Assembly (NCBI GenBank): GCA_964270895.1
Contig: OZ185444.1
DNA length: 64,000 bases
Reading direction: 5' to 3' (one strand)
Source of the DNA: Podarcis filfolensis
Taxonomy: Eukaryota
Shown here: positions 12,240-63,580 of the stretch, in pieces
How the letters are laid out: each line of letters opens with the position of its first letter
Numbering within the stretch: the stretch's first letter is position 1
The notes under the pieces: model-generated
What the model was told of the DNA's origin: nothing
The model's database searches: none
What the model saw: only the letters and a program-made list of their open reading frames with translations
Position numbers and translations under genes: made by a program

Positions 12240-12242
12240 TCA

Positions 12243-12782
<540 letters not shown>

Positions 12783-57686: not shown

Positions 57687-57767
57687 GTTTGAGGCTGTGA
57701 TGGGTCGTCCCCCAAAGAAACGCTCTCTCCTTGGATTTCATTGAAGCACTTCTCACAGAAATGATAC
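57687..57767 (-). CDS. EP300: p300 exon 20 (RING), canonical 81-nt form; alternative acceptor at 57797 gives 111 nt
   Basis: ccgacag|G TAT CAT..YHFCEKCFNEIQGESVSLGDDPSQPQT|gtgagt. Confidence 0.97.
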
Positions 57768-58127
57768 CTGTCGGCAAGAAGGCCATATTTGGGTGAACTG
57801 TTCCGTCCACACAACACAGCCCAAGCCAAGCAACGGAGCCACCAATCACAGCAGGCCAAGGAGGGGGGCGGGAGCAGAGAGCAGGTCATCAACGGCGACA
57901 GGGACATTCAATGATGAAGATTTATGGGACCCAGAGTTTGTGTTTGGTTTTGTTTTTTTGTTTGGGTTGGTTTTTTTGCAATCAAAGCCAAGTGCAGACA
58001 ACGACAAGCATGAAGGAGAAATAAAAAAACAACACACACACACGAACAAAGAAATAGGGATTTGCAGGACGAAAAACAAAAACACAGAAGCAAGACAGGA
58101 CAACACAAAGCAGAAAGCCAAGGCAAA

Positions 58128-58140
58128 GCACAGATTAGCA
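58128..58140 (-). promoter_or_regulatory. Candidate distant branch point (TGCTAATC, branch A at 58135) at the 5' edge of an AG-exclusion zone
   Basis: Matches YTNAY; followed by a long U/C tract; no AG from 58146 to 57800. Confidence 0.6.
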
Positions 58141-60254
58141 TTAAATCTCTCAAATGGGATCACAAGCAGCAAATTATAGCAAATAAAAAGAGTATTCCAT
58201 TTTAGTATGCCCATGCCCTCCTCATTTCAATAATCAATGCTACAATAAAGCAGAGAATCAAAATGAAGAAAGGGTAAGAGCAATTGCTGCTCTGACATCT
58301 GCATCAGGGTAGCAACTCTTTTCACAAGAACATCTGCCAGGAGAGGGCTGGAAAGGGGTGAAAACAATCCATCTTGAGAATGCTCAAATGTTGACAGGCC
58401 AGTCCTTCCCCTCAAAGCATTTTTTGTTTGCAACATCTGTTTAAAGCAGCAGTAACCACCCCCAAAACAATTTCTATGCAATTGTTCATGATCTGCCAAA
58501 ATGACAGGTGCTTTAAGGCATCTGACAATCAGCCGTGCATATGTATGTTCTTAATATGTGACATACTGATGCTCCATGCCTCCAAATTGATGTATAATTG
58601 ACATATTAAAAGGATTCCATCTTCATCTAAATTAATGTTGAATGCTTTACTCAAGATGTTTTTTTACCCGCAAGAGTGCACAGAAACTGCAGCCTTTCCA
58701 TTGCTAAGCAAGTTAATTTGAGTGCAAACATACAACAAAAAGAAACAAAAACAAAAAACAAAACTGTGACAGTATTATAAAGCAAAGCAAAACCAACACT
58801 AGAGGAAATGTAATTGCTAAGGGACGGATCACTTCTTCACCACCTATGTTTCCTATCTATAACAGGTTAGTTTATTTATTACACTGATACAATGACAAAC
58901 ATTGATTTGGACATTCAAAAGACCAGTGTCCAAAGAACCACTTAGTGTTATCTGCTTGGTGGGGGGGGCTTTGCCTTGCATGTTTTGGACTGCAACCTTC
59001 CATTCCACATTGTTTTTGAAACTCCTCTTAATTTCAAAAGCTGTGATATGGCATGACAGTCTGCTGATTAAAGGTAAAAAAATCCAGTAGCAATGCCCTA
59101 GCCCATGTACACACCTACAGCAGTTCTTTGGATCCCAGCTCATATGTATACATATGAAGATTTCTTTACTCAAGTTGGCATTTGTGATAAAAATGGCTTA
59201 TGGCATGAAGCTGTAAAGTTATAGAAATAAATGAAAGCTTAGCTTTAGATTTGTTAAAGAACTAGTTGTCTACTTCAGCAACCCACCCAAAGCACGATTT
59301 GCAGCAATACTCCTGACAAAAAACGTGAAAAAGTTGTGTTCTCAGTTTTCCTTCCTCCCTTAGAAGAGCTCCAAACACAGTTTTTCCTATCAGATGTTTT
59401 CCGACCCCAAAGCAGAACATAGAACCATGCTATCACAGAAAGCAAGTCTTCAGAAAGACTGCCATCATCATGCAGGTGCAGGTGGTAAAATTAAGATGCA
59501 CGGTGATGCTTATTTAATCAAACAACTCCAGCGTTCACTCCTCAGTTAATTTCCACTTCAGAAAAGGGCTATTGAGAACAAACTGAAGGCTGCAGGTCCA
59601 GTGGAGTACAGAGAAGTTGCTGGTTTACTGAAATTCCCATAAATGATGCCGGACCAGGTAAATCTTGGTCTGATGCAGTGCAAGATTTAGCTTCTTAAAC
59701 AAAAGTACATACTCAGGAACACTTGACAGTTATGCCTCAATAGTTAAGAGATCCCAAGCACACACACAGGAGTGCTACTAGCATAGAAATTCTAGCTGAG
59801 AGTGAGAGGCTGTAAGAGGCCATGGCAGAGTCAAGTCAGCCCCTCTCTGACCTTGCTTTTCACGCAGCTCAAACAAAACACAGCTTTACAACTACAGCTT
59901 TGGTTGAAATAATTGTGATCTAAAACAGGAAATATGTCTCCCTTAGGACAAGACTGAATGTTAAATGCAGTGAACTCAAGATGCAAACATGCATGCTTTT
60001 CTGTGCACTGTTTCATACAGAGGAAAAAATGATGGCTTTACTGCAAAAGCTTTGAACTTATCTAAAGCATATGGAGAGTTTATATTAACATCCTAATTTC
60101 TGAAACAGGAAGAAAAAGTCAATTGATGCAACAAGGCACTTGGCTTGCATGGGAAGTAATCTGCTGAGTATGCTATAAATATAAGTGCATGCCTGCCTAT
60201 ATCTAATATAATTTTTCACAGCAGGTGCAATGCTGTACCCAAGCATTTTCTTAC

Positions 60255-60343
60255 CTGTTTTGGTAACTGTAATATGTAGCATCTCGTGGGATTGTGCATA
60301 ACTGTTTGCCATAGCAACATAAAGTCTGTGGTGAAAACTCCAA
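60255..60343 (-). CDS. EP300: p300 exon 19 (RING start)
   Basis: LEFSPQTLCCYGKQLCTIPRDATYYSYQN(R); 89 nt; ttttcag| and |gtaaga. Confidence 0.97.
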
Positions 60344-63444: not shown

Positions 63445-63580
63445 NNNNNNNNNNNNNNNNNNNNNNNNNNNNNNNNNNNNNNNNNNNNNNNNNNNNNNNN
63501 NNNNNNNNNNNNNNNNNNNNNNNNNNNNNNNNNNNNNNNNNNNNNNNNNNNNNNNNNNNNNNNNNNNNNNNNNNNNNNNN
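63445..63580. other. Assembly gap (136 N)
   Basis: Run of N. Confidence 1.

Follow-up and report, generated by a model that had tools for sequence, protein, structure and literature searches.

Exons spliced from distant branch points, with long AG-exclusion zones upstream of them, form a described class. In the work of Gooding et al. 2006 (PMC1431707) the zone measures 381 nt for PTB exon 11, 438 nt for nPTB, 590 nt for Fugu PTB and 287 nt for GABBR1 exon 23; alpha-tropomyosin exon 3 is also covered there as a distant-branch-point exon. EP300 is not mentioned in that paper, and a full-text literature search returned no paper on an EP300 alternative acceptor or intronic element. The initial annotation of the DNA analysed here had proposed an undescribed system upstream of EP300 exon 20. 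That description was overstated, as the class is known and the isoform with 10 additional amino acids is present in many gene models; we found no paper on the splicing event or on the element.

Both p300 and CBP belong to the central co-activators of transcription, and their genes are disease genes (Rubinstein-Taybi syndrome, cancer). We report that the ∼350 nt at the 3′ end of EP300 intron 19 are probably a selected AG-exclusion zone starting at a candidate distal branch point. The zone is very probably tied to an ancient alternative acceptor, displaced by 30 bases, through which the RING domain gains 10 amino acids. As read from the sequence, EP300 is a strongly selected further case of the known distant-branch-point exon class, with a predicted branch site.

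An AG-free zone at the 3′ end of EP300 intron 19

The sequence comes from Podarcis filfolensis (GCA_964270895.1, contig OZ185444.1); the whole stretch analysed, called the window below, has 64,000 nt, and the sense strand of EP300 is the (-) strand. Translation places an 89-nt exon (LEFSPQTLCCYGK...YSYQN plus 2 nt) at 60255..60343 (-) and the 81-nt RING-domain exon ((R)YHFCEKC...PQT), which the initial annotation had numbered exon 20, at 57687..57767 (-), with intron 19 between them (60254-57768, (-)). The AG of an upstream acceptor, the -30 acceptor, was located at 57798..57799 (-) from sequence and orthologs. It is followed by an in-frame exon extension of 30 nt (57768..57797, (-)), which codes for SSPKYGLLAD according to translation, orthologs and annotated proteins. 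Within the extension lie TTCAC, which is a weak branch-point motif in a proximal position (A at 57794), a brief run of pyrimidines and the AG of the canonical acceptor (57769-57768).

Between the AGs at 58148-58147 and 57799-57798 the (-) strand has no AG; these 347 nt (57800..58146, (-)), identified by AG count and ortholog comparison, make up the AG-exclusion zone of the -30 acceptor. The AG-free run initially annotated from 58146 to 57800 is therefore exact; seen on the (+) strand, the CT-to-CT gap is 349 nt. Among 4,517 sense-strand AG gaps in the window this one is the longest, the runners-up being 180 and 172 nt. The number of AGs expected in the zone is ∼24 at the window-wide AG frequency (0.0706), 11.7 by zone base composition and 7.6-8.7 under block shuffles (25- or 50-nt blocks), with zero observed. 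Shuffles without any AG were found once in 20,000 with 25-nt blocks and never with 50-nt blocks, which puts P(0) at ∼5e-5 or less. The depletion is specific as well as strand-specific, given that the same strand of the zone carries GA seven times and CT 37 times.

To compare EP300 acceptors, a turtle protein was aligned to the whole window. The other 14 acceptors have AG-free stretches of just 15-73 nt, and the canonical acceptor of the RING exon (exon start 57767) has one of 30 nt only; the long zone belongs to the -30 acceptor. Unlike the other 14, the -30 AG is preceded by G/U-rich sequence and has no adjoining pyrimidine tract.

Close to the 5′ edge of the zone lies TGCTAAT (58134..58140, (-)), a candidate distal branch-point sequence by motif and conservation, with its yUnAy branch A at 58135. 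Against U2 snRNA all six pairing positions are pairable, two of them as G-U. Measured from the 5′ edge of the zone this A lies 12 nt in, and its distance to the G of the -30 AG is 337 nt, in agreement with the initial annotation. Just 3′ of it the sequence runs for 71 nt with U, C and G only (58064..58134, (-)), a candidate extended pyrimidine tract. The alignment delimits a 47-nt core (58096..58142, (-)) that holds the branch-point motif and the start of this U/G/C-rich tract.

A mid-zone A/C-rich tract (57936..57977, (-)), recognised by its sequence, has no AG because G is absent from it, though it is rich in A; an A-rich tract is also present in the bird, anteater and frog zones. Tandem repeats were considered as the cause of the zone and rejected, as just a weak 18-nt repeat, on the (+) strand, was found in the A/C tract. 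The open frame 57907-57686 was likewise rejected as coding: its openness reflects the scarcity of A in the sequence, and in orthologs the frame is broken by indels. No Rfam family matched the intron at threshold; the only hit, which resembles SNORD91 and lies on the other strand, reached 25.5 bits where the gathering score is 51.

Conservation of the zone and of the candidate branch point

Eight loci were compared: the window, the EP300 loci of turkey, barbet, anteater, frog, Astyanax and Lampris, and CREBBP of Tauraco; the seven loci set beside the window do not include turtle, lizard, shark or bichir. A check proposed with the initial annotation was to determine zone lengths in orthologous EP300 and CREBBP introns. 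AG depletion was seen in all seven, with AG-free zones of 328 nt in turkey, 360 nt in barbet, 340 nt in anteater, 324 nt in frog, 409 nt in Astyanax, 414 nt in Lampris and, at the same place in CREBBP, 253 nt in Tauraco. In seven of the eight loci (44-81 kb each) no AG gap anywhere in the locus exceeds the zone in length. The exception is frog, where one longer gap is a tandem repeat, and the zone is the longest non-repetitive gap in every locus. The eight zones together contain 70 GAs and no AG, if one leaves aside the single AG that both birds have 3 nt ahead of the -30 AG; counts per zone on the sense strand are 27-51 for CT and 4-13 for GA. In the amniote-plus-frog alignment at least 157 substitutions have created no AG (p ∼1e-9 if 12.3% of random ones create AG). 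The earlier claim that selection maintains the AG-free zone is thus borne out both by its presence in seven of seven other vertebrate EP300/CREBBP loci and by these substitutions.

TGCTAAT is kept in the window, the two birds, anteater, frog, Lampris and Tauraco CBP. In six of these seven loci it follows the last upstream AG at a distance of 12-14 nt, which places the claimed site at the 5′ edge of the zone, the CBP paralog included. The 47-nt core is near-identical in seven of the eight aligned sequences, from teleost to mammal and in CBP (95.7% identity over 47 nt with the Tauraco CREBBP intron). In Astyanax CTAAT is gone from the core and two AGs come after the core; not every locus, then, has the distal site.

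A blastn comparison of 57790-58282 gave identities of 86% with anteater, 85% with barbet and 79% with turkey, with alignments extending to 58272-58282; the remainder of intron 19 does not align with these three. The stretch 58147..58282 (-), which contains 5 AGs, thus appears by blastn as the upstream part of the same conserved non-coding element of ∼490 nt, conserved in amniotes, and the 5 AGs fall in the conserved 135 nt upstream of TGCTAAT, with none on the downstream side. Since this whole region is a conserved element, the amniote sequences are not independent, and independent support for conservation comes mainly from frog, the two teleosts and the one CBP locus. The teleost zones are mostly unalignable with the window sequence, yet AG-free. 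In a moth locus the AG-free zone is only about 108 nt long.

The alternative acceptor and the 10-residue insert

The extension is in frame in all eight vertebrate loci, where it is also conserved, and in the moth locus (L008), which has the same 30-nt acceptor spacing at the same intron position. Of the annotated CBP/p300 proteins at least 80, with insects and mammals at the two ends of their range, contain the insert, so that public gene models already include the long isoform; the majority of isoform annotations come from automated pipelines. A single species can have both forms annotated, one with the insert and one lacking it, e.g. Dendrobates (2438/2428 and 2431/2421 residues). The initially annotated +30-nt acceptor is, on this evidence from annotated proteins and orthologous loci, a real and deeply conserved alternative 3′ splice site. 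Isoforms skipping exon 20 were absent among 195 annotated proteins.

Vertebrate transcript contigs for p300 (P0302) and CBP (P0324) carry the short form, and judged from them the short isoform appears dominant. The long isoform may be minor, and in that case it is less evident why a 350-nt zone should be under such strong selection.

The extension codons TCA, CTT and CTT are invariant in seven of seven orthologs and paralog, while 17 of the 22 codons for invariant residues in the adjacent exon vary synonymously. Invariance at TCA and CTT CTT is consistent with the extension harbouring a second branch point, a proximal one, along with its pyrimidine tract. In mammals an extra AG (in a CAG codon for Q) is tolerated at a distance of 5-6 nt downstream from the A proposed as proximal branch point; scanning rules predict that it would be skipped.

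Proposed mechanism

We propose that the distal branch site is TGCTAAT (A 58135) followed by the 71-nt U/C/G tract. With U2 snRNP at this site, or at other conserved branch-like sites in the zone, the first AG met would be that at 57799-57798, and exon 19 would then be spliced to a RING exon lengthened to 111 nt, with SSPKYGLLAD added to the protein. The short exon (start 57767) would be served by the weak proximal TTCAC (A 57794) and the short pyrimidine run. Because these lie within the coding extension, 4 nt 3′ of the upstream AG, that AG would not be seen. With two branch sites, each having its own acceptor, the choice of isoform would amount to a choice of branch point; no AG would be tolerated in the vertebrate EP300/CREBBP zone because a new one would capture splicing from the distal site. 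The branch adenosines used, the isoform ratio, and regulation and its regulators are what we infer rather than observe.

A broader reading can be put forward tentatively. An intronic element of ∼350-500 nt that predates the duplication and has been kept in EP300 and CREBBP from fish to mammal might be a dedicated splicing switch, made of a distal branch point and an enforced AG-free runway. It would set the share of p300/CBP with a 10-residue insert, as old as bilaterians, at the tip of the RING β-hairpin. The RING domain is reported in the literature on the p300 core structure to restrain acetyltransferase activity; if the element is such a switch, it would for this reason tune acetyltransferase regulation in particular tissues.

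Alternative explanations

Two further branch-like sequences lie closer to the acceptor. The TTGAT and pyrimidine tract initially annotated near 57890 are both present: TTGATGAC (A at 57889) is followed by a tract that is C-rich (57851..57893, (-), from sequence), and this block is kept in tetrapods and can still be discerned in teleosts and in CBP. The GTGATTGG block (57835..57850, (-), from sequence and alignment; A at 57846) is found in most of the eight aligned sequences and is degenerate in frog and Tauraco CBP. It also resembles a reverse CCAAT/Y-box.

These nearer sites could serve the -30 acceptor, with the rest of the zone acting as a binding platform for repressors or activators and AGs avoided only as cryptic acceptors beside branch-like or pyrimidine-rich elements. 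The two blocks are among the best conserved columns across the eight sequences, and at 48 nt (GTGATTGG) and 91 nt (TTGATGAC) from the -30 AG they stand at more usual distances and could act without the distal site. A single strand that binds proteins is also expected to be little folded, and folding predictions give the zone less structure than its shuffles have (z-scores between -0.4 and +2.7, above zero in seven of eight species). The region from the tract to the -30 AG is G/U-rich with GGG, like the G-tract elements that bioRxiv 10.1101/363804 describes between the pyrimidine tract and the 3′ AG. Nearer sites leave unexplained, however, why in six lineages the 5′ limit of the zone stands 12-14 nt upstream of the TGCTAAT A, and why the equally conserved 135 nt upstream carry AGs. 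Against a platform, the MBNL, CELF and PTB motifs claimed for the zone are not enriched: counts of YGCY/UGCU, UGU-rich and UCUU/CUCU motifs equal the dinucleotide-shuffle expectation in eight of eight species, and that claim is not supported. We consider this explanation unlikely, though it is the strongest competitor. A hairpin of the U/G-rich with the A/C-rich tract, bringing the distal branch point near the acceptor, was tried separately and rejected, as energies in the eight species are not below those of dinucleotide shuffles.

A single distal branch point might instead serve both acceptors, the AG being chosen at the second catalytic step or through factors that mask the first AG. The distal branch sequence is strong and the proximal TTCAC weak, and a short isoform that appears dominant alongside a strongly selected zone would suit one site for both. 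Scanning rules (PMC1431707) favour the first AG when the spacing exceeds ∼12 nt, though, and the invariant TCA and CTT CTT are easier to account for if a branch point and its pyrimidine tract lie inside the extension. We regard such an arrangement as improbable and prefer two branch sites with an acceptor each.

It is very improbable that the ∼490-nt element acts as DNA, for example as an intronic enhancer or internal promoter with NF-Y at ATTGG/CCAAT, and lacks AG as a side effect. In each of the two teleost zones ATTGG/CCAAT occurs six times against 1.2-1.3 expected (p<0.002), and one copy is kept in most of the aligned sequences. The depletion is, however, strand-specific, with 0 AG against the CT and GA counts given above, which a double-stranded DNA element would not produce; moreover, the zone adjoins the acceptor and starts at a branch-point consensus, and the tetrapods carry only a single intact box.

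Finally, a by-product of chance or of T/G-rich and A/C-rich low-complexity composition, to which the rarity of A in the 5′ half of the zone, the lack of G in the A/C tract and the long window gaps of other dinucleotides (TA 386, TT 319) might point, is effectively refuted by the zones of orthologs, mostly unalignable teleosts and the paralog included, by the locus-wide gap ranks and by the AG counts set against GA and CT, as shuffles of local composition still expect 7-9 AGs and GA is not depleted.

Implications

The pair of isoforms differing by 10 RING residues, found from insects to mammals, is apparently unstudied, and the vertebrate AG-exclusion zone beside it is unusually long, unusually well conserved and present in both paralogs. 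Intronic variants that create an AG up to ∼340 nt (EP300) or ∼250 nt (CREBBP) upstream of the exon are candidate splice-disrupting mutations, and in the zone they would be ignored by standard diagnostic filters. The locus also offers a clean natural model for how branch-point choice selects among nearby acceptors.

Comparison with known systems

EP300 shows the features of the distant-branch-point class in the length of its zone, the branch motif and tract at the 5′ edge, the orthologs and the alternative splicing, the last resting on isoforms annotated in many other species. As in the exons of PMC1431707, an AG-free stretch of hundreds of nt adjoins the 3′ splice site with AG at normal frequency upstream, the 5′ end of the zone holds a branch-point sequence of consensus type together with a long tract rich in pyrimidines, zone length is kept in orthologs despite sequence divergence, and the exon is alternatively spliced. 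Those cases are cassette or mutually exclusive exons, whereas the EP300 zone serves the upstream one of two acceptors 30 nt apart and its proximal branch site appears embedded in coding sequence. The EP300 zone further differs in being common to both paralogs from teleost to mammal, and its branch point is here predicted from sequence.

EP300 likewise has what marks tandem in-frame 3′ splice sites, namely two in-frame AGs, a conserved extension and both protein forms annotated. It resembles the alternative 3′ splice sites of intermediate spacing treated by Akerman and Mandel-Gutfreund 2007 (PMC2018619), in which in-frame acceptors lie tens of nt apart and the extension, holding codons and splicing signals together, is highly conserved in nucleotides. 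Compared with the pairs described there, the EP300 pair is far older, reaching to moth, and in vertebrates it is coupled to an AG-free zone of 250-410 nt.

A likeness of layout exists with REPA elements (bioRxiv 10.1101/363804) and SRRM3/4-dependent microexons (bioRxiv 10.1101/2024.09.17.613571), and a role of hnRNP H/F or SRRM3/4 in EP300 is not implied. In these layouts too, the branch point and pyrimidine tract are displaced upstream, and G/U-rich sequence with GGG and UGC stands just before the regulated AG; in EP300 the distance is an order of magnitude larger, and the product is an exon extension, not a microexon.

Gene context

Six-frame translation places EP300 on the minus strand of the window, with bromodomain, RING, PHD, HAT, ZZ and TAZ2 exons in order and a last exon of 727 codons; the encoded p300 most closely resembles turtle and bird proteins. 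The RING-domain exon, encoding (R)YHFCEKC...PQT, lies at 57767-57687 (−) and the exon preceding it at 60343-60255 (−), so that intron 19 runs from 60254 to 57768 (−), ∼2.5 kb. Downstream of EP300 there is an open frame with MBT-repeat-like sequence (12240-12743, −) that looks L3MBTL2-like by eye, which would be the neighbour order of human as well. A run of 136 N at 63445-63580 is an assembly gap or masked sequence.

AG-free zone at the 3′ end of intron 19

Sense-strand AGs at 58148-58147 and 57799-57798 are separated by 347 bases without AG (58146-57800, −), exactly as the initial annotation had it. Of the 4,517 gaps between successive AGs on the window's sense strand, this zone is the longest, followed by gaps of 180 and 172 nt; the other 14 EP300 acceptors of the window have ordinary pyrimidine tracts and AG-free stretches of 15-73 nt. 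The expected number of AGs is ∼24 from the window-wide AG frequency, 11.7 from the zone's own base composition and 7.6-8.7 from shuffling inside 25- or 50-nt blocks; of the 20,000 shuffles in 25-nt blocks only one was free of AG, and with 50-nt blocks no shuffle was. On the same strand GA, for which base composition predicts as many copies as for AG, is found seven times, and CT, which is the AG of the opposite strand, 37 times; it is thus AG alone, and only on the transcribed strand, that is depleted.

The AG-free stretch before the canonical acceptor is only 30 nt long, owing to the AG at −30 (57799-57798). In the terms of Gooding et al. (PMC1431707), an AG-free stretch beyond the nearest AG is a ‘second’ zone, and such zones may owe their length to composition alone. 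The finding thus hinges on the AG at −30 being a functional acceptor.

The upstream acceptor and the 10-residue insert

The 30-nt segment between the AGs (57797-57768, −) is in frame and encodes SSPKYGLLAD. Full-length sequences from protein searches show this insert at exactly the same junction in at least 80 annotated CBP/p300 proteins. The vertebrate p300 carriers, with the pattern SSP[KQ][YF]GL[LIV]A[DN], include teleosts, frogs, a snake, polar bear, horse and anteater; the vertebrate CBP carriers include a turtle, a bat and teleost CBPb, and CBP-like proteins of skates and a shark have the insert as well. Among invertebrates, we found SLKAYGLGSD in beetles, SLKAYGVVSD in Lepidoptera, SLKEYGVASN in flies and a shorter version in a clam; one beetle lineage has 11 residues (SSLKAYGLASD) vs 10 in other beetles. 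Insert-free forms are annotated in the same groups too (e.g. other Lepidoptera, a mosquito, chelicerates), and both forms occur within single species, such as the Dendrobates isoforms, which differ by 10 residues. In the CBP/p300-like gene of the moth Cydia splendana (L008:17266-17298), the intron position is the same and two AGs 30 nt apart flank an in-frame SLKAYGVVSD. Judged by these comparisons, the AG at −30 is a real, ancient acceptor, and the tandem pair is older than the insect/vertebrate split.

Public gene models already include the long isoform. In vertebrate transcript contigs it is the short form that appears, and the long one may accordingly be a minor or tissue-restricted product. 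In two birds (turkey and barbet EP300) the upstream acceptor is a tandem AG-C-AG, a NAGNAG-type pair 3 nt apart (L001:41222-41227 and L002:43953-43958), which could add one further Ser. An AlphaFold2 model of the long-form bromodomain-RING-PHD segment (51-sequence alignment, mean pLDDT 71) has the insert as a low-confidence loop between beta-strands at model residues 150-155 and 167-171; the insert would therefore be predicted to lengthen a hairpin tip of the RING domain.

Conservation of the zone

The initial annotation had proposed comparing AG-free lengths in orthologs. Upstream of the AG at −30, all seven fetched vertebrate loci have a long AG-free stretch (253-414 nt; n = 8 with the window): 328 nt in turkey, 360 nt in barbet, 340 nt in anteater, 324 nt in frog, 409 nt in Astyanax and 414 nt in Lampris EP300, and 253 nt in Tauraco CREBBP. 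It is the longest sense-strand AG gap of the whole 44-81 kb locus in seven of the eight; the frog zone is second to a tandem repeat. A 416-nt AG-free stretch in an EP300 intron of Nanorana (L005:49654-50070) consists of ∼29-nt C/T-rich units in tandem, and repeats are thus able to mimic AG-exclusion zones.

In block shuffles every p300 zone has a probability of zero AG of at most 2e-4; with the CBP zone it is 5e-3 to 8e-3. Summed over the eight zones there are 70 GA and no AG, the sole exception being an AG 3 nt before the AG at −30 in the two birds. The amniote-plus-frog alignment holds at least 157 substitutions in the zone, none of which created an AG; ∼12.3% of random substitutions would do so, giving a probability of ∼1e-9. 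Since the teleost zones can scarcely be aligned with the window, they are largely independent observations. The sequence facts and their conservation are established, and the zone is a real feature under strong selection. The moth gene has only ∼108 nt free of AG, with TTACTAAT ∼70 nt upstream, so the very long zone appears to be a vertebrate feature; it appears to have existed already when EP300 and CREBBP duplicated, or shortly afterwards.

Candidate branch sites

Positions 57790-58282 align over ∼490-520 nt with anteater (86%), barbet (85%) and turkey (79%), while almost nothing in the rest of intron 19 aligns to birds or mammal, except one 76-nt piece common with barbet. By alignment this is a deeply conserved non-coding element that is more than the AG-free stretch. 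It reaches ∼135 nt beyond the zone (58147-58282, −), aligning there with bird and mammal; these conserved 135 nt upstream of TGCTAAT hold five AGs.

The best-conserved piece is a 47-nt core (58142-58096, −), with 95.7% identity to the bird (Tauraco) CBP intron and near-identical in frog and Lampris. TGCTAAT at its start is a candidate branch site (yUnAy adenosine at 58135), in which six of six U2-pairing positions can pair, two as G-U, and which is directly followed by an A-free run of 71 nt. The last upstream AG lies 12-14 nt before the adenosine in six of the seven motif-bearing lineages and ∼54 nt before it in Lampris. Astyanax has the core without CTAAT, then two AGs, and ∼40 nt further on TTGAT with a very long pyrimidine tract, which looks like turnover of the distal site.

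The extension itself starts with TTCAC, followed by a short pyrimidine run; A 57794 lies 4 nt past the AG at −30, with the G of the canonical AG 26 nt further on. In all seven orthologous or paralogous loci compared, TCA is the only codon used for the Ser and CTT the only one for the two Leu residues, and in the adjacent exon 17 of 22 invariant-residue codons vary synonymously. Mammals have Gln (CAG) for Lys, which places a further AG, out of frame, 10 nt inside the extension (Tamandua, L004:60620-60630; also Ursus and Equus proteins). An AG so near a branch point is normally bypassed (PMC1431707), and this one, which follows the putative proximal branch A 57794 by 5-6 nt, would be expected to be. 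The invariant codons and the tolerated mammalian AG are consistent with the extension containing a weak proximal branch point and tract that serve the canonical acceptor.

Proposed mechanism and alternatives

On balance we favour branch-point choice as what decides the isoform, a reading that is plausible but unproven and draws on eight vertebrate loci. A distal branch site at or near 58135 would lead to the first downstream AG, the acceptor at −30, and the form with 10 additional residues; the proximal site inside the extension would lead to the canonical AG and the short form. An AG newly arising in the zone would capture splicing begun at the distal site, and AGs would be excluded for that reason. 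Adenosine usage, isoform proportions and regulating factors are inferred here.

The acceptor at −30 could instead be served by conserved branch-like sites that lie nearer to it: TTGATGAC (A at 57889, −), in a conserved block with a C-rich tract, and GTGATTGG (57841-57847, −, A at 57846), an ATTGG/CCAAT copy conserved in most of the eight aligned sequences. The final 45 nt ahead of the AG at −30 are G/U-rich and have no pyrimidine tract.

A role at the DNA level is unlikely to have caused a depletion that is confined to one strand; as an additional function of the element it may exist, given the ATTGG/CCAAT boxes enriched in two teleost zones. These boxes (reverse Y-box or NF-Y-type; L003:32818-33227 and L007:23058-23472) number six per zone vs ∼1.2 expected (p<0.002), and could be either recurring branch-like UGAU sites or NF-Y sites that act at the DNA level.

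The MBNL-, CELF- and PTB-type motifs named in the initial annotation are present, but are no commoner than in dinucleotide shuffles in any species. An RNA fold bringing the distal site near the acceptor is not supported: the zones fold no better than shuffles in every species, and mostly worse. No Rfam family reached threshold in intron 19; a weak SNORD91-like match there, on the strand opposite to EP300 (60018-60107, +; 25.5 bits vs a gathering score of 51, E = 0.33), is probably due to chance.

Relation to known systems

The case had been put forward as the best candidate for an undescribed system in the window. Literature searches found no paper on the long isoform and nothing about this case. 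Its classes are already known: distant-branch-point exons with long AG-exclusion zones and, likewise, conserved alternative acceptors with coding extensions. In verified distant-branch-point exons the zone opens, at its 5′ end, with a branch-point sequence and a pyrimidine tract, and AGs further upstream are as frequent as usual (PMC1431707); the EP300 zone is alike in having TGCTAAT and an A-free tract at its 5′ end and AGs upstream, with branch use here being predicted. It joins both classes, is unusually well conserved and occurs in two paralogous genes, EP300 and CREBBP, of high biomedical interest.
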